Numbered from the stretch's first letter, positions 13,705 to 44,365 are shown. The stretch: 64,000 bases of DNA from Utricularia gibba (GCA_002189035.1 NEEC01000016.1:1240001-1304000); one strand, 5' to 3'. The notes: generated by a model not told the origin, from the sequence alone. Translations and numbers: made by a program.

Positions 13705-14720
13705 GCCCCCAGCTTGTGCAATCCAATTTCGAGAGTACCTAAACTCCTGCCCAGCGGATAAATTAGAATTTGGTCATATATAAACATTGTGTGAAAAAAA
13801 ATAATGATCATATATGTATCTTTTTATATTAATGTGAGAGATAATGTGACATTGTTCACTTTTCTAAATGACTTCATGCCTAGCACTCGAGTGAAGGAAA
13901 CTCTAGAGTAATATCACCAAGCTACGGATGGTCTCTTGGAGGAGGCACGATAATTTATCTTTTATTATAAAGGTTTGTTGTATTACTTTAAATTATTAAT
14001 ATATTAGATTTTATATACATACGTTTTGTTTGGTTAAAATTAAAAATATATTTGAGTTATAAATATATGTTTTAAAATGATATGTTTGATTAATATGTTT
14101 TAAAGAATTTTTGAAAATATTATTAGAGGGGTTACTATGCTATGTTTTTTGAGTAATTTTCTTTTTTAAAAAATATTAACCTCTAAATTCTTTTAAACGT
14201 AAAAAAAATTTATTTTGTTCGTTGTTGAATATTACTAATCTTATTTAAATAAAAATGAATGATTTAAAAAATATAATTATGTTTGTAAACAGTGTTTAAT
14301 TTAAAAAAAAAATTATTTATATCATATTGTAAAGAAAGTTTTATAATTATTTTATATAAAATATTAATAAAATAATCAAAACATATCCAATTAACATAAC
14401 ATACATCTTTATTATTGAATAAGACCATTGAGAAATAACTACAACCACTCTATGTTATGAAGATGATATCAATAATAATAATAACTATATATATATTTCA
14501 TGTGTAGGGTTTTGGGAAGTGAAGTAGCAACTGTGGATGCGTATCTCATATGTAAAAAAAGGAAATATCTGCTAACAATTCCAACACACATACACAATAC
14601 AACAGGTGACCACTTTTGCGAACATTCGATGATCAATTTACAGCACAACAGTATGTATACCAGGGAAGGGGGAAAGGTTGCAGAGAGTAGATCGGCATCC
14701 TTGACAGCACAGAGGCGCAC

Positions 14721-15009
14721 TCAGCTCTCCATATAGTTAGCACATGTCACGCAGGAAGCGATAACGGACATACAGGTAGCGAAAACCTTCCACATGCCAC
14801 ACAGTAGCTTGCTGCAAGAATGCAACCAGATTACAAGCAACTCAACAGAGAGTAGAAGAAAAAGGATGAAGGAATGCATGAGCTGGTTACCAGCATCCCT
14901 TCTTCTCTGAGCTGCTCCCCGAACCGGCATCAAGAGCAAACGTGAGTAGGAAAACCCATCCATGGTGATGGTGGATTGGCTGATCCAGAAACGTACCTTG
15001 CGTAGTCAT
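14721..15009 (-). CDS. Cys-rich transmembrane-module (CYSTM/PCC1-like) microprotein, copy A, 45 aa; intron-1 acceptor reads CG instead of AG
   Basis: Exons 15009-14997 (ATGACTACGCAAG|GT), 14924-14891, 14811-14721; intron 2 is 79 nt GTAACC...TTCTTGCAG. Product MTTQGSGSSSEKKGCCKLLCGMWKVFATCMSVIASCVTCANYMES. Model derived from copy B. Confidence 0.65.
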
Positions 15010-15035
15010 GGCTTGCTGCTGCTCTCTGGGGTGGG

Positions 15036-15063
15036 TTGACTCCCCTTCCTGCTTCTATATAAA
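15036..15063 (-). promoter_or_regulatory. Core promoter of peptide gene A (TATA box plus W-box-like TTGACT)
   Basis: Minus-strand CCCCCTTTATATAG about 50 nt upstream of the ATG and TTGACT at 15036-15041; both conserved in copy B. Confidence 0.55.
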
Positions 15064-15944
15064 GGGGGAAGACCTGGAGGAAAGACTGGAGAGAGAAGGG
15101 ATGGGATCATCATTATGTGGCCGACATTGCTTGACGGTGGGGACTGGCGGCTTTGAGACCAAGTCTAACATTGCGGCTTCAAACTACCAGCATTAATTGG
15201 TAATGCATCAACGGAACCACATCTGCATGATTGGAGGCTAAAAATTACGTGCAAATGGTTAAAGATTCCAATTTTTATTGAGATTTAAAATATTGGTGTT
15301 AATTAGAACAAATCCCATACCCATCTTCCTACTTATTGAGGGTGATTTTGAAAAATAAACCCTATAAAATGATTGTGTTAGAAAACTACCCAATTTATGT
15401 GTAATTTTTTGTGCTTAGTATATGTGAGAAAAATGAAGGATATATAGTTTTATAAACAACCTTACTTATAGGCCTATGTGCGATACAAATTAATTTAATG
15501 TAGGATGTATTCATTTTGTTTATATAAAAAAATCGTTAATCGTTTGATATTAATTAGGTTAAATTCGAAGCATTTTAAAATAAAAAAATGAATTATAACT
15601 CAATCAAAATTCAATTATGATTATATCATAATTTGTTACAAAAGTATTTCATTTCAAAAGATGGGGTTCAATATAAAGCAATGATGTGGAGCAATCAGCA
15701 ATGTGGCCAGGAATCGCTTCACAAGTCAAGCCTGGTGGTTTTAAATCAGTCAAATAAGCCGGCTTTAAATAAGTGCACTACAAATATGGTATCATATGTG
15801 TGTAAAAAACTTATCATTTTTATATTAATTTTTGGATTTTGATTACTATTTTTTATTGTTTTTGTATTTTTATAATTATTAGTGCTGTGTCAGCTAGCAG
15901 GCCTGATAAGCGATCTACATTAACAGACATAACTTGGTCATCGG

Positions 15945-16264
15945 CAGTGTTTTAAAATCGTAGGTTCGACCCGGTTAGATCCAAACCCATGTTTTAGTGG
16001 GTTGGATCCAACTCTATTCTTTACTTTTATTTTTTTTATTTTTTATTATTTATTTTATGATAATGGTTATGAATAAATATAAAATATATTATACATATTT
16101 GATATATATTTTAAATAAATCTTAATAATTATATTTTTATATATGTATTTATATTGATAGTAGAAAATAATTATTTGTATTTAAATTACACATTATTTTA
16201 ATGAGATATGAGATGATAAATATGATTTTGATTAAACTTTTTAATATAATTGTATCAATTATTG

Positions 16265-16296
<32 letters not shown>

Positions 16297-16460
16297 TTTC
16301 AATATTTTGATGTACTAAATTATGATTTTATAATTATATTCTAATATTTTGATAAATATAATTCAAAATTAATGAATTTGATTCAACCCATTTTAAAAAT
16401 AGTTGAACCCAAAATCATAGTTAGACGATTGAATGGGTTCAACCCGTTTTTAAAACACTA
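15945..16460. mobile_element. hAT-type MITE (516 bp)
   Basis: Terminal inverted repeats CAGTGTTTTAAAA / TTTTAAAACACTA; 8-bp target duplication gtcatcgg / gtcatagg (7 of 8 match); absent at the matching site of duplication unit B. Confidence 0.85.
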
Positions 16461-17823
16461 GTCATAGGATATGGGTTAGTAGTTCCTAATAGAACTTGAG
16501 GACAGACGCATCACCGGGTAAAACCAGCCTATCTCTTGGAATCATCTGCATACTCATGTGTTGGAAATAAGTATGTGATAATCGGACGAGCATACATAAT
16601 GTCTAAGTGAAAATGTAAATCATATTAAAAAATATTAAATTCAATCGATTATTAATTATATGTAATTTATTATATATTTAACTACTTAATTTTAATTTTA
16701 CAACATGGGATTTTTTATTCCAATATCTGTCATCAATTTGAATTGATCTTTGATTTGATTATACTATAAGTCAATCTGATTTTTTTACCTAAGTCTAATA
16801 TATCTTTTTTTATAGCAGAATTTAAATTAGTACGAAATCTATCTTTGCCACCTAAGCCATCCCGTGAAACAAATGTTTTCATAACATGTTGAAAATAAAG
16901 ATCCGATAAATTAAACAAACACACATGAAATAACTAATAAAAAAAATTAAATACAATCGATCACTAATATAAGCTTCACTCATAAACTCAACTCACATGT
17001 TCATATCTTAGAACCTAACCCACTTTTATATTTTGTGAAGTGAGGTTGGTTATTTAATAAAAAGATGGGCATCAAACTTTTGGTTTGGTATCAACTCACC
17101 TATTTTATTATGTAACCAAATTTCGACACATTAAATACAAGGATGTTGATAGATAGAAATCAATTATATTATATGATTGCTTATCTTAAAAATGAGTCAC
17201 ATTTGATGATTTGGAATAAAAATAAATGTAGGAAAATATTTTTTTGTTCATTCCACATTAATCTCACTTGATCTCTCATCAATATTTCAACAAATTTCGC
17301 AACTACATTGTTGGAATCCTCTACTTACATGTCATGCAGCACCCGCTTCTACCAAAATTTGTTCCTTTGTGAAACCACAGTTATTGTGGTTGGGCATGGA
17401 CTTTGGCTCGCTTTGCATATATTCCCCTCTCCTATCGAGCCCTCATGTAGTTTGCTCCCGCACCTCATATTTGACCATATTAGCCTACCTAATCCATACG
17501 TTTTCGACTCTATGGCAACACAGAGCCAGATCGCGGGTGCTTCTCATACCAAATTGTAATGATCTATTCCAGTCTTATCCAAAAGTACAACATTTTTCAA
17601 CATCCTGATGTTCAATAACATCACTTCAATTTTGGCCTATTCATTTTTTTATAAGAGGAGAAGTACTCTTGAAGTCACTCTGCCCACCCCTCGAGTGCTC
17701 TGTGTTTCTTCGTAAAAATTGCAGTGTAGTTCAACATTATAATGTGTGGTATCATTATTTGGATTCTTGCATGTTTGCCATTTATAAGAAGGAATGTGCT
17801 TTCGACTGCATGGACTACTTTTA

Positions 17824-18275
17824 GGTAGTATTTGATTGATAGAATTAATTAGATTTAAAAATTAAATTATAAATTATATCGTATTTATTTTGTAACTTTT
17901 AATGAGCTCGACAAAACGAGGTCTTTTTTTAAATTCCACATATATTGATTTATTTAAATTATCTCTTGTCTTTACTTTACTTCATATTAGTTATAATCCT
18001 ATTAGGTAGCATTTGTTTGATAGAATTAATTAGATTTATTATAAATTATATTATATTTACTTAGTGCCTTTAAATAAGCTAGAGAATAGGAGAATTTTTT
18101 TAATTCCGTGTATACAGATTTCTTTAAAATCATGTCTCTTTCTTAGTTTATTTAATATTAATTTTAATTCTAATAACTAAACATTATCTAAAAAGATTAT
18201 TCTTCTACATCACTTTTATTTAAATTCAAGTTAATTAAATCCCTTTTATGTTAATTCCATAAATCAAATATTTCC
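17824..18275. mobile_element. PIF/Harbinger Tourist-like MITE with a duplicated left end
   Basis: Left end TTA|ggtagtatttgattgatagaat repeated at 18005; right end attccataaatcaaatatttcc|TTA is an imperfect inverted copy; TTA flanks. Confidence 0.55.
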
Positions 18276-18604
18276 TTACGGTGAAATGTGTCCCATTGAG
18301 ATGCTTCTAATACCGTCTTTAGAACAAGAAAATTTTGAATGACTTTCTCATTGATAACTATAGGTTATATACAGAGATTATAAAAAAATACCGAAAATTA
18401 AGCTTATAATATAGCCCATAAATACAATATTCTCCTAAAATATAGAACGTAAATATTAACAGGATCAATCTTGGTTAACTTTTAATTCAATCCCGTACCA
18501 TATTTTATAACATGATCCACATCCTTTGTGCAATCCAATTTCGAGAGATGGAGTTTTGTCACCAAACTCCTGCCCAGCCCTCGGGGGAAATAAACTCCGT
18601 CGTT

Positions 18605-18812
18605 ACGCCAAGATTGACCGGCCGGTTAACCGGTAACGGATTTCCGGTTTTTCAAAACAGATGGTGGCCCACTTGTGTAAAGTTGATCAGCTTTAAATAT
18701 TGGATTTCCAAAATCCGGTTTTGACCGGTCAAATCCGAATTTCACCGATCATAACCGGATTTTGAACCGGTCCCTTACCGGTTCGGTTTGAAAACCCGAT
18801 TTGAAAACATAG
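18605..18812. mobile_element. Truncated MITE rich in ACCGG subterminal motifs
   Basis: Many (A)ACCGG/CCGGTT motifs; ends ttgaaaacatagg (hAT-like terminus); present only in duplication unit B. Confidence 0.45.
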
Positions 18813-19614
18813 GGATTACGATAACCAACGATACGGATAGGAGGCACGAGCATTTCTATTTTATTGTAAAGGTTTTTATATCATATTTTAATTGGCAATA
18901 TATTTGTTTTTATATACATACTTTTCGTTTGATTAAAAGTAAAAATATATTTGATTTACAAATTTTATAAATATATGTTTTAAAATGATATGTTTGAAAG
19001 AATTTTTGAAAAAAATGATTAGAGGGGTTATTATACTATGTTTTTTGACATATTTTCTTTTTTTTGAAAAACATTAATCTCTAAATTCTTTTAAACCAAA
19101 TCAAATTTAATTTTTTTTGTGTTAAATAATACTAATCTTATTTAGATAAAAATGAATGATTTGAAAAATATAATTATATTTATAATGAGTGTTTTTTTTT
19201 TAAAAATAATTATCTAGATCATATTGTTCAGAAAGTTTTATAATTATTTTTATATTAAATATAAATAAAATACTCAAACACATATAAAATAACCTACATC
19301 TTTATTATTTAATAAGACCATTGAGAAATAACTACAAGCACTCTATATTATAAAGATGATAATACTACCAATAATAATAATAAATTTAGTAACAAAAAAT
19401 AGGTATATTTTATGAATTTGAGTTTCATGTGTAGGGTTTTTGGAAGTGAACTAGCAACTGTGGATGCGTATCTCAATATCTGCTAATAATTCCAACACAC
19501 AAATCACAAATTTAGCAGTGACCGGTTTTGCGAACATTCGATGATCAATTTACAGCACAAGAGTATACCAACAAGGGAGGGGGACAGGTTGCAGAGGCGC
19601 ACTCAGTTCGCCAT

Positions 19615-19891
19615 TTAGTTACCACGTGTCACACAGGCAGTGATCAAGGACGCGCAGGAATCCAAAATCTCCAGCATGCTACCCAGTAGATCGCTGCAAG
19701 AATGCAACCAGGTTACAAGCAACTCAACACAGAGTAGAAGAAGAAGGATGAAGGAATGCATGAGCTGGTTACCAGCATCTCTTCTTCTCTGGGCTGCTCC
19801 CCGAACCTGCGTCAAGAGAAAACGTGAGTAGGAAATGCATCCATGGTGATGGTGGATTGGCTGATCCCAGAAACGTACCTTGCGTAGTCAT
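19615..19891 (-). CDS. Cys-rich transmembrane-module (CYSTM/PCC1-like) microprotein, copy B, 41 aa
   Basis: Exons 19891-19879, 19806-19773, 19693-19615; introns 72 nt (GTACGT...TTTTCTCTTGACGCAG) and 79 nt, both canonical and pyrimidine-rich. Product MTTQGSGSSPEKKRCCDLLGSMLEILDSCASLITACVTRGN. TATA box upstream at ~19945. Confidence 0.7.
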
Positions 19892-20058
19892 CGCTTGCTG
19901 GTGCTCTCTGGGTTGGGTTGACTCCCCGATGCCGCCTCTTGCTTCTATATAAAGGGGGAAGACCTGGAGGCGAGATTGAGAGAGAAGGGATGGGATGGGA
20001 TAATCATCATGTCACAGTTGATGGTGGCGGCGTTGAAACCAGGTCTAACATAGCGGCT

Positions 20059-20180
20059 TGCCTGTTTGGTTGGTGGATAACGCCCTCAGGTTTGGGTTTC
20101 GGTTGGGTTTATAGGCAATACCCATATGAAAACCTAGGTATCAAACAAAACCCACCTAATCTCTTCAACCAAACGCGTTC
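20059..20180. mobile_element. Small Tourist-like MITE remnant
   Basis: gcctgtttggttg ... caaccaaacgcg imperfect inverted ends; homology to unit A breaks exactly here. Confidence 0.35.
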
Positions 20181-20183
20181 TTA

Positions 20184-20325
20184 GGTTTCCCCGTATTGAG
20201 TCAAATTAAGCTGCAGGGTCCGGTCCACTTCTGATGGTGCACTTTCGTCAATTCCTTTAAATTTCAGCCTTGCGACCATACTACCCCTGTAATCCAAAAA
20301 CTTTGATTTCTCATAAAGTGCCGGC
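20184..20325 (-). rRNA. Degenerate 18S rDNA fragment (non-functional)
   Basis: Reverse complement matches the conserved 18S segment ...ATGAGAAATCAAAGTTTTTGG...GTATGGTCGCAAGGCTGAAA.TTAAAGGAATTGACG...CTTAATTTGACTCAA.ACGGGGAAAC with scattered substitutions. Confidence 0.9.
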
Positions 20326-37824: not shown

Positions 37825-39502
37825 ATGGAGTTTGCGGCTAAGGATTCAAGCTGGTGGGTGTTTACACTCCCTGCGTTTCTTGGATTCGATTCCATTCTCG
37901 ATGGATACCTTCTTTTGGCAGTTTTTCTGGCATTTCTCTCTGCGGGGATCGTCACCTGGTTTTACTCCCCTGGCGGCGCCGCCTGGCAACATCGCATGAA
38001 CAGAGCAGGCTCAACTCAGATTCCTGGGCCAATAGGGCTGCCGATTTTCGGCAGTTTGTTTAGTCTCAGCAGTGGGTTGGCTCATCGTACTCTGGGGGGA
38101 TTGGCGGAGAGGATGAATGCGAAGCAGTTGATGGCGTTCAGTATCGGTGCGACGCCGGCGGTGGTTTCTTCAGACCCGAAAATCGCGAAGGAGATTCTGA
38201 CGTCACCGCATTTCGCCGATAGACCGATTAAGCAATCCGCGCGTAGTTTGATGTTCACCCGAGCGATGGGGTTCGCTCCAAATGGTACTTATTGGCGTCT
38301 CCTACGCCGCATCGCGGCGTCGCATCTCTTCGCACCGCGGCAAATAGGCGCCCAGGAATGCGGGCGTTTACATGATTGCGCTGTGATGGTTAGGGGGATT
38401 TCTGGGGATATGGCCCGCGACGGCGTTGTCTCTGTGAGGAAACATTTACAGGCGGCGTCGCTGAATAATATAATGGGTAGCGTTTTTGGGAAGAGGTACG
38501 ACGCTGCGGCAGAGTGCGAGGAGCTCAGAGAACTCAAAGAAATGGTGAGAGAAGGATTTGAGTTGCTTGGCGCTTTCAATTGGACGGATTTTCTGCCGTG
38601 GATGGCGTACGTTTACGACCCGCATCGCATTATTAACCGCTGTGAGAAGCTCGTTGTTCGTGTGAGGAAATTGGTGAAGGGGATCATCGAAGAACACAGA
38701 GCGAAGGAGAAAAATTCATCGGGATCCCAGGATTTTGTTGACATTTTGCTTTCGTTGGACGGTGAGGAGAAGCTCGGAGAAGATGATATGATCGCTGTTT
38801 TATGGGTAAGTTTTGCTGTGAAGGCGAATAGCTCTGTTTCACTTGCGCCGTTGCTTACAGGATTTGTTTCTGCAGGAAATGATCTTCAGAGGAACCGACA
38901 CAACAGCTTTACTGACAGAATGGGTTATGGCGGAATTGATTCTGCATCCCGATATTCAATCGAAACTCAGGCAAGAACTCGACGCCGCCGTCGCCAACAA
39001 ATCGTCACTAACACCCGGAGACCTCGCATCGCTGCCGTATCTTCAAGCGGTTGTGAAAGAGGCTCTCCGCATCCATCCTCCTGGCCCGCTTCTCTCATGG
39101 GCTCGTCTCTCCACCGCCGAAGTTCATCTCAGCAACGGCATGGTCGTCCCCGCCGCCACAACCGCCATGGTGAACATGTGGTCAATCACCCACGACCCCC
39201 AGGTCTGGGAAACCCCACTGCAATTTACACCAGAGAGATTCGTGCCGAGCATGGGCGGCGAGGAAGTCGACGTCCGTGGCGGCGATCTCCGACTCGCTCC
39301 GTTCGGCGCCGGCCGCCGTGTTTGCCCCGGGAAAAATCTTGGCATGATTACAGTCACTCTCTGGGTGGCGGAGCTTGTGCGCCGCTTCGAGTGGTTGGAG
39401 GACCCAAAGAATCCAGTTGATTTGACCGAGTTGCTGAAGCTATCATGCGAGATGAAGTACCCGGTGTCGGCGGTGGCGGTTAATCGGAATGTTCCGAACT
39501 AG
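37825..39502 (+). CDS. CYP78A: Cytochrome P450 CYP78A (CYP78A7-like), 535 aa, 2 exons
   Basis: Exons 37825-38805 and 38876-39502 (70-nt GT-AG intron at AVLW|EMIFRGTDT); [18 protein letters not shown]; heme motif [11 protein letters not shown]; N-terminal [15 protein letters not shown]. Confidence 0.95.
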
Positions 39503-42713: not shown

Positions 42714-44365
42714 ATGGATTCCGGTGATCAATCTCTGCAATTGATTCTCATCCCATGGCCAGTAATGGGCCACGTTCAAATTGTTGAATTCGCCAAGCTC
42801 CTTCTTCCCCGTATGCAACTTCGTCTTCCTCCGGGTAACTGTTTTCTTTTGCTCTTCTTGGTTGCTGACATACACAAAATCTCTTTTTCCAAGGTCAGAT
42901 CTAAGTGTTGGCAGTACCAGGAGTTTCGTGTGTTTTTCGTTGCTCCGATTTTGGTCTAAACTAATTTCTTGCACTTGATCCATACTTCCACAGGGAAGAA
43001 GCTTTCGATCACAGTGTTGCTAATGAGACTCCCTGATTCAATCGACACTGTGAGCGGCTCCTTTTCCGACCAACTTTCGGCTTCCTCCGTCACCCCGCTC
43101 AACTTCTACAGCCTCCCTAGTGTTGACCCGGCACCGGAATGGAGCTCTAGAACCAGGGGATACTTCATTCATAGCTTGGTCCTCCGCCAACGATCAAATG
43201 TTTCAGAGTTTTTATACCCCGGAAGCAATCCATCGCCGGTATCGTCGTCGACATGCTCTGCACCTCGATGATTGGGGTGGCACGGGAGATGAATATCCCT
43301 AGCTACATATTCTTCACTTCTCCGGCGAGCTTCCTTGGGGCAATGCTCCATTTTCAAGCCCTCAATAATGAAGAGAATCAGAATGTGGCTGAGCTTAGAG
43401 ACTCAGAGACTGAGTTGCTGGTACCAAGCTTTGCGGTTCCGGTTCCCCCTAATGTCTTGTCACAGGTGATTGTGAACAAGGAACAATGGAAAACCAGATT
43501 TCTTCACTACGCAAGAGATTACAGAAAGACCAGTGGTATAATTATCAACACTTTCATGGAGTTGGAAACACATGCCCTCAACTCATTCTTGGCTGATTCA
43601 TCTTACGGTTCCAGTGGACTCCCTCCCGTGTTTGCAGTTGGCCCGATTATAAACCGGGCTCCATTTGTCGATGAATACCGATCGGATATAGTTCAATGGC
43701 TGGACAAGCAGCCACCAGGATCAGTGGTGTTTGTTTGTTTTGGGAGCCAGGGGAGCCTAGACAAGAACCAGGTTCAGGAGCTGGCTAAAGGGCTGGAGCA
43801 AAGTGGAAGCCGTTTCCTTTGGTCTCTCCGCCGACAACCATCGAACACACAGCGTGCAAGTTTTCCAACTGAGTACACAAGCTATGAGGAAGTGTTGCCA
43901 AAAGGATTCCTGGAGCGCACCGCAGGGATCGGAATGGTGGCCGGTTGGGTGCCGCAGCTGGAGGTACTCGGCCACACGGCTGTGGGTGGTTTCGTTTCAC
44001 ATTGCGGTTGGAATTCGGTGCTGGAGAGTCTATGGTTCGGGGTTCCGATCGCAACATGGCCTTTGCACTCCGAGCAGCAGATGAATGCATTTCAGCTTGT
44101 GAGAGAGCTTGGTTTGGCGGAAGAAATAAGCATCAGCTACTTGGTGAGCGGCGAGGAGCGGCCATTGATCTCGGCGGATGAAATCGAGAGGGGGATCAGG
44201 GCGGTGATGGCGGAGAGAAGCGAGGTGAGGAAGAGAGTGGTCGCCATGAGGGAAAAGAGCAGGAGCAGCGTTGCTGAAGGTGGCTCCTCTCACATCTCTC
44301 TCAGTAAATTCATCGAACATGTTATGTGCAACTCACTTCCCCAGTCTGATAACATATATAAGTAA
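42714..44365 (+). CDS. UDP-glycosyltransferase, UGT71-like (group E); one 5' intron and a 1-bp frameshift at ~43217-43231
   Basis: LILIPWPVMGHVQIVEFAKLLL, intron ending CAG at 42993, KKLSITVLLMRLP, IAGIVVDMLCTSMIGVAREMNIPSYIFFTS, PSPG box WVPQLEVLGHTAVGGFVSHCGWNSVLESLWFGVPIATWPLHSEQ. Confidence 0.88.

Follow-up and report, generated by a model that had tools for sequence, protein, structure and literature searches.

The question raised by the locus described here is whether genes so short, and so finely split into exons, that no list of open reading frames (ORFs) contains them can be recognized from splice signals read by eye and, if so, what such genes might produce. The locus lies within a 64,000-nucleotide (nt) stretch of the Utricularia gibba genome (NEEC01000016.1:1240001-1304000; hereafter the window, to whose full length all coordinates refer), in which the original prediction, made from the sequence alone, placed a tandem pair of three-exon genes for Cys-rich microproteins of the CYSTM/PCC1 type. 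We found that the two members of the pair, denoted here copies A and B, are real, transcribed and spliced tandem micro-genes that are hidden from ORF lists. On balance, we favor the explanation that they are TATA-driven genes transcribed by RNA polymerase II, with predicted products that are Cys-bearing, helical, fast-evolving microproteins, probably associated with membranes.

The pair resides in two homologous units, which are ~79% identical according to blastn and show a mean column identity of 87% in the MAFFT alignment:

13953-15179, minus strand: duplicated unit A, with promoter, gene and ~600 nt of AT-rich downstream DNA (blastn, MAFFT)
18852-20059, minus strand: duplicated unit B (blastn, MAFFT)

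What had been described as a ~4.8 kb duplication thus turns out to be two units of ~1.25 kb each that are spaced ~4.9 kb apart (4.88-4.93 kb, start to start). The 3.6 kb separating them is AT-rich, contains sequences resembling miniature inverted-repeat transposable elements (MITEs) and is unrelated to the units; a third copy of the unit is not present within the window.

The gene models derived for the two copies are the following:

19516-19919, minus strand: copy B transcript, with 5' untranslated region (UTR), three exons and 3' UTR (RNA contigs)
19879-19891, minus strand: copy B exon 1, coding part, ATG plus 10 nt, phase 1 (sequence, RNA junction)
19807-19878, minus strand: copy B intron 1, 72 nt, GT..AG (RNA joint 19804/19877, the cut being shifted by +2)
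19773-19806, minus strand: copy B exon 2, 34 nt, encoding the polar head and KKRCC (sequence, RNA)
19694-19772, minus strand: copy B intron 2, 79 nt, GT..AG (RNA joint 19693/19773 in runs X1 and X2)
19615-19693, minus strand: copy B exon 3, coding part, 79 nt with the stop, 25 helix codons plus TAA (sole open frame)
14553-15032, minus strand: copy A transcript (X10 contig covering 14553-14811 and 14891-15004; loose end of an X1 contig at 15032)
14997-15009, minus strand: copy A exon 1, coding part, 13 nt (sequence)
14925-14996, minus strand: copy A intron 1, 72 nt in the reference, non-canonical GT..CG (retained in X10 and X2)
14891-14924, minus strand: copy A exon 2, 34 nt, encoding KKGCC (sequence, RNA)
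14812-14890, minus strand: copy A intron 2, 79 nt, GT..AG (RNA joint 14811/14891 in X10, X1, X2 and X9)
14721-14811, minus strand: copy A exon 3, coding part, 91 nt, 29 helix codons plus TGA, an island of high divergence (sequence, AlphaFold2)

The RNA evidence comes from contigs of public sequencing runs of the same organism, in which both units are present; four runs (X1, X2, X9 and X10) from three studies were placed on the region 14400-20150. The two junctions of copy B predicted from the sequence, 19879/19806 and 19773/19693, had been set as a test beforehand, and both are joined in a single X2 contig of 239 nt that covers 19531-19693, 19773-19804 and 19877-19919, with both introns removed; an X1 contig extends the copy B transcript to 19516. 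The skipped segments end in CT..AC on the plus strand, that is, GT..AG on the minus strand, which orients the RNA as a product of the minus strand. In copy A, intron 2 is removed in all four runs. Across the spacer (15168-19391), RNA depth is zero in each of the four, so the signal represents RNA rather than contaminating DNA. The mRNA of each copy is short, ~250-380 nt, with two small introns. Contig word depth is 63 for copy A and 0 for copy B in X10 and ~52-54 for both copies in X2, a difference which indicates that the two copies are regulated differently. Among the public runs, X2-X5 contain copy B.

Both copies carry the predicted architecture of a TATA box followed by exons of 13 nt, 34 nt and 79-91 nt, and conceptual splicing reproduces exactly the two anticipated translations. 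The ATG of copy B is at 19891 and its TAA stop at 19617-19615, yielding a product of 41 amino acids (aa), whereas that of copy A is at 15009 and yields 45 aa, provided that intron 1 is spliced. The claim of canonical introns holds for both introns of copy B and for intron 2 of copy A, whose intron 1, however, ends in CG. The spliced peptides are indeed missing from the ORF track, where the mechanical list gives only fragments that read through introns. Genes with a 13-nt first coding exon escape ORF lists and most annotation pipelines; here, splice signals read by eye predicted the micro-genes exactly, and public RNA data confirm them.

In the reference, intron 1 (19807-19878 and 14925-14996) contains no in-frame stop in either copy, and it is 40-aa ORFs reading through this intron that are listed. 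Such read-through might represent an exitron-like alternative, or it might be coincidental.

The promoter elements, all on the minus strand, are similarly placed in the two copies:

15056-15061, minus strand: TATA box of copy A, TATATA (motif; conserved block in the alignment)
19946-19951, minus strand: TATA box of copy B, TATATA (motif)
15146-15151, minus strand: GCCGCC (GCC-box core) in the copy A promoter (consensus match only)
20026-20031, minus strand: GCCGCC core in the copy B promoter (consensus match only)

The TATATA element stands 52-60 nt 5' of the ATG in both copies, and the GCCGCC core is retained by both promoters ~140 nt 5' of the ATG. The X1 contig that ends at 15032, 29 nt downstream of the start of the copy A TATA box and at a C/A initiator-like step, continues into a 23-nt non-genomic extension ending in GGG, which looks like a template-switch tag at a capped 5' end.

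Two features of the non-genic parts of the units and the spacer can be mentioned here. Just past the transcript ends, a 53-nt block (14496-14548 in unit A, 19423-19475 in unit B) stands out from its less similar surroundings, with 96% identity between the copies, and carries on the minus strand AAACCCTA, a telo-box-like motif. Within the transcriptionally silent spacer, MITE-like inverted or direct repeats occupy 15940-16490 and 18600-18830; they were probably inserted after the duplication.

Copy A departs from this simple picture at intron 1. Contigs of X10 and X2 extend from exon 2 to exon 1 without a break, intron 1 included (14891-15004/15009), and show the same CG acceptor as the reference. 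Both also contain one extra base after 14984, within a run of G (14984-14986), which makes the intron 73 nt long, and another RNA/reference difference of 1 nt, again an extra base, occurs at 19574 in a G/C run. Given that the extra bases appear in runs of two studies and that both fall at G/C runs, the reference probably has two homopolymer errors. When intron 1 is retained, the frame of copy A stops after 26 codons with the extra base, whereas the reference letters would give a 69-aa product. Run X1 tells a different story: an unspliced X1 contig on copy A has an AG acceptor, several copy-B-like letters and one letter found in neither A nor B, and a further X1 contig connects exon 1 of copy A with exon 2, skipping 72 nt, with a short side of 26 nt. 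Together, the AG acceptor and the spliced joint imply that an additional A-type allele or paralogue is present in X1 and is spliced. Copy A of the reference genotype is thus a splice-site-disabled or polymorphic copy at the RNA level, and its protein would be truncated; because the AG acceptor is lost and intron 1 is kept in the abundant copy A mRNA, copy B is the intact gene. The difference in the splice acceptor among samples amounts to a ready natural knock-out for genetic tests.

The absence of an intron 1 splice acceptor from copy A is also what a young, decaying duplicate without function could look like, one in which a copied promoter drives transcription, the ORF drifts and the divergent island in exon 3 (see below) results from patchy gene conversion. 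The presence of only two members in 64 kb, with none detected elsewhere, and the amino-acid identity of the tails, which at 10/25 is no higher than random substitution gives, are compatible with this scenario as well. Nevertheless, we consider it improbable. Strong expression of both copies, at word depths of ~50-60, recurs in several independent studies, and their regulation differs; copy B shows no damage to its promoter, splice signals or ORF; divergence is lower in the introns and UTR blocks than in the flanks (p = 0.001); and in another sample, the allele or paralogue with the AG acceptor is spliced.

Are the transcripts translated? The predicted ORF uses the first AUG, which has a purine at -3, and is the sole ORF of at least 15 aa in the spliced copy B mRNA. 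In exon 3, only the predicted frame is open in both copies, and the coding part (88 nt) has accumulated no indels between them, compared with 43 gap columns across the next 171 nt. The 25 shared tail codons contain 21 differences, of which only 3 are synonymous, 2 of these being in the two shared Cys codons. By codon position, the differences are distributed 12/4/5, so that changes at the second position, the most radical ones, are the rarest. Taken together, the pair is quite probably protein-coding.

The rate at which exon 3 has changed is the most unusual property of the pair. Divergence between copies A and B, measured by segment as the Jukes-Cantor (JC) distance, is as follows:

Promoter: 0.23
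5' UTR: 0.12
Exon 1: 0
Intron 1: 0.07
Exon 2: 0.06
Intron 2: 0.04
Exon 3, coding part: 0.34
3' UTR: 0.20 (a value inflated by indel misalignment)
Downstream DNA: 0.14-0.19

The coding part of exon 3 is more divergent than the introns (p = 5e-6) and than the downstream DNA (p = 0.008), which, in turn, diverges more than the introns (p = 0.001). Within exon 3, dN is 0.41 and dS is 0.19, and the non-synonymous rate exceeds the non-coding rate (p = 0.002-0.004). An X9 contig on copy A, which represents a third allele or paralogue, has three coding changes in exon 3 that, read by position, are Val32Ile, Ser35Ala and Met43Val, all three non-synonymous on this reading. Such fast divergence suggests diversifying selection or, at least, constraint that is limited to the helix, its hydrophobic face and the Cys residues; diversifying selection is the simplest reading of the island.

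The same measurements bear on the possibility that the transcripts are spliced, polyadenylated non-coding RNAs, with any function residing in the RNA itself or in its transcription, and that the short ORF is incidental. Conservation is lowest in the putative coding exon and highest in the introns and UTR blocks, dN/dS does not fall below 1, no homologue or domain was found for the peptides, and copy A is highly expressed with a retained, frame-breaking intron, all of which would be natural for such RNAs. A neutral RNA, however, would be expected to diverge at the rate of the flanks, 0.14-0.23, as opposed to the 0.34 of exon 3. Nor would an incidental ORF be expected to remain open in the same single phase in both copies and free of indels next to an indel-full 3' UTR, with synonymous changes in the shared Cys codons and sparing of the second codon positions. 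In addition, an Rfam scan of the transcripts produced no family match. We therefore regard a purely RNA-level role as rather unlikely.

If translated, the first AUG would open the 41-aa frame in copy B or the 45-aa frame in copy A. In each predicted peptide, a polar head of Ser/Gly/Thr character (residues 1-11) leads through a basic Lys-Lys-x-Cys-Cys hinge into a hydrophobic to amphipathic helix of 25-29 residues, with Cys at positions 15, 16, 20, 29, 36 and 39 in copy A and at 15, 16, 29 and 36 in copy B. For the exon-3 translation, aligned with that of copy B, AlphaFold2 returned a single helix spanning residues 2-29 of 30, with a mean pLDDT of 90.6. The positions that are identical or conservatively replaced between the copies (18, 19, 22, 25, 26, 29, 32, 33, 36 and 37) follow a spacing of 3-4 and make up one face of the helix that includes Cys29 and Cys36; these two invariant Cys of the tail, being seven residues apart, lie on the same face, and the charge-changing replacements (17, 24, 27 and 39) lie elsewhere.

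Since neither peptide has a signal peptide, both would be expected to stay inside the cell. The best Kyte-Doolittle window of 19 residues scores 1.64 in copy A and 1.49 in copy B, that is, borderline for a membrane span in the former and below in the latter. Tail-anchored membrane proteins in general have one C-terminal transmembrane segment of ~19-21 uncharged hydrophobic residues and no signal peptide. In copy A, Lys24 and Glu44 enclose 19 uncharged residues of mean hydropathy ~1.5 (summed by hand); in copy B, Glu24 and Asp27 lie inside the helix, which makes the tail more polar than a classical transmembrane helix would allow. With hydropathy at these levels, peripheral attachment aided by S-acylation of the hinge Cys would fit both copies better than a transmembrane tail. 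There are precedents for this mode of attachment: yeast CYSTM proteins bind membranes peripherally through acylated Cys-rich tails (PMC10840359), and the Cys-rich tail of PCC1 serves both as a plasma-membrane anchor and for homodimerisation (PMC3903633). For the peptides of U. gibba, localisation and S-acylation are inferences: the peptide would most likely be held at the cytosolic face of a membrane by the helix and the S-acylated di-Cys hinge, much as in other small proteins with Cys-rich tails, and its conserved hydrophobic/Cys face may mediate pairing, either between two such peptides or with a membrane partner. Outside this face, the surface of the helix has diverged far more quickly than the non-coding DNA around it.

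Several results weigh against this reconstruction of Cys-bearing, helical, membrane-associated microproteins and temper our preference for it. In simulations of 21 random changes, the frame stays open with p ~0.55 and both shared Cys are retained with p ~0.17, so that the coding signal available from two copies is modest, and the difference between dN and dS in exon 3 is not significant (p = 0.37). The divergence island, observed in two copies only, could be due in part to gene conversion that homogenised the portion from the promoter to intron 2. The AlphaFold2 model provides modest support because short hydrophobic peptides are readily called helical, and the helical periodicity of conservation falls short of significance (p = 0.08-0.12). 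With three acidic residues, the helix of copy B is unlikely to cross a bilayer. The main mRNA of copy A is frame-broken and yet strongly expressed, which fits a function at the RNA level or no function equally well. Finally, the pair is an orphan, in that low-power searches found no homologue outside the window.

The low power of these searches is readily explained: the collections do not include the proteins of this organism, and ORFs of 40 aa from short RNA contigs are scarcely represented in them. A word-index homology search with peptide A produced no candidate. An exact look-up of both peptides in a protein collection was likewise blank, which says little given that two neighbouring ORFs of the window are also absent from that collection. 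A HMMER search of 1.8 billion proteins with a two-row profile of exon 3 gave 0 matches, a profile of 30 positions being almost powerless. In the ESM Atlas, the exon-3 part reached a best score of 0.75 and a recognition value of 1371, both under the useful range, and two exact-pattern scans of metagenome contigs with conserved exon/intron strings gave 0 matches.

The family to which the pair had been assigned offers the most specific comparison. The CYSTM/CYSPD superfamily (PF12734) includes Arabidopsis PCC1/PCM and CYSTM1-13, pepper Bs5, Digitaria CDT1 and yeast Cpp1-3, among which PCC1/PCM, Bs5 and CDT1 influence disease resistance and metal tolerance. The hallmarks of these proteins are an N-terminal strand element, a variable head, usually rich in Pro/Gln, and a C-terminal helix that contains 5-6 Cys, including a run of 3-4, and is followed by an acidic residue (PMC2804304, Venancio & Aravind); their length is 60-150 aa (PMC10840359). 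Three exons with the tail encoded in exon 3 are found in Brassica and Arabidopsis CYSTM genes and in pepper Bs5 (PMC12853963, PMC10030403), and the Arabidopsis PCM/PCC1 genes, like the pair, are arranged in tandem (PMC8049917).

Measured against these features, the pair shows some general similarity to CYSTM genes. Both copies are three-exon genes with a Cys-bearing tail in exon 3, and both products are small and apparently non-secreted, with a polar N-terminus, no signal peptide and a Cys-containing hydrophobic helix that reaches within 1-3 residues of the stop, as in CYSTM modules. Membrane attachment via acylated Cys is a plausible common mode of action, and the GCCGCC core in both promoters is also in keeping with shortened, divergent members of CYSTM/PCC1, that is, tail-anchored or palmitoylated stress or defence proteins. 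The three-exon layout, however, is common and hence not diagnostic.

Several of the more specific features fail. A Pfam-A hmmscan of both spliced peptides with E up to 10 returned no CYSTM match; the sole row was DUF7032, with an E-value of 0.057, far below the cut-off of that family. The longest run of Cys in either peptide is two, and this CC lies ahead of the helix, in contrast to the CCC(C) inside the helix of CYSTM proteins, the 4-6 Cys of the pair being scattered at i, i+7; in copy B, there are only 4 Cys altogether. Copy A ends in Met-Glu-Ser and thus has an acidic residue after the helix, but copy B ends in Arg-Gly-Asn and has none. The heads, of 13-16 residues, are rich in Ser/Gly/Thr, with neither a Pro/Gln-rich segment nor a strand element, and the total length of 41-45 aa is under the range of the family (PMC2804304, PMC10840359). 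Furthermore, the tail of the pair is fast-evolving, in contrast to the strong conservation of CYSTM tails across eukaryotes. Thus, the proposed miniaturised branch of CYSTM is not borne out by the Pfam search, the Cys pattern or the N-terminus; true membership in the family appears improbable, although the products of the pair may function like a CYSTM protein.

Two other groups of small proteins resemble the pair in different respects. Sarcolipin and phospholamban in animals and Pmp1 in yeast are single-helix micropeptides that regulate membrane pumps or transporters and, like the predicted products described here, are ~30-50 aa long, with a short polar head, one helix and no signal peptide, encoded by tiny, overlooked genes. 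Their helices, however, are clearly transmembrane and conserved, whereas the helix of copy B is amphipathic, with acidic residues, and the pair is fast-evolving. Defensin-like, SCR/SP11 and LURE peptides share with the pair the tandem duplicates, the conserved non-coding and leader parts, the hypervariable mature part and the retention of Cys, but are secreted, having a signal peptide and a disulphide-knotted fold, as opposed to the single helix and lack of signal peptide in the pair. A more far-reaching and unlikely extension would be that the pair belongs to a lineage-restricted family of ~40-aa, non-secreted, helix-only proteins, in which a face of Leu, Met, Val and Cys (with Cys at i and i+7) is fixed for binding to a membrane or a partner, the opposite face diversifies in a host-pathogen or other arms race inside the cell, and loss of the acceptor acts as an on/off polymorphism. 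In any case, if the peptides are made, they would be an orphan, fast-evolving addition to the little-understood Cys-bearing, membrane-associated microproteins of plants.

The neighbours of the pair in the window are ordinary plant genes, namely those for a bHLH protein, a CTLH/RING protein, a glycosyltransferase, a mitochondrial carrier and an AP2/ERF protein, along with a copia fragment. The features considered individually are the following:

20259-20286, minus strand: near-perfect 28-nt match to a conserved 18S rRNA hairpin (SSU_rRNA_eukarya 1118-1145), upstream of copy B
37825-39420, plus strand: cytochrome P450, CYP78A7-like (best hits ~73%, in Lamiales)
43253-44365, plus strand: UDP-glycosyltransferase ORF, ~4 kb from the P450
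51224-51718, plus strand: copia-type reverse transcriptase fragment (Pfam RVT_2, E = 8e-23)

Larger scores for 18S rRNA, obtained when regions were cut, were truncation artefacts and shrank to the 28-nt match in the uncut region. The P450 was considered as a CYP79 adjacent to a glycosyltransferase, that is, as part of a cyanogenic cluster, an assignment that proved wrong: the atlas label "tyrosine N-monooxygenase" is misleading, and the best identities of this protein, ~70-73%, are to sequences from Genlisea, Paulownia, Sesamum and Olea, in line with a CYP78A7-like enzyme.

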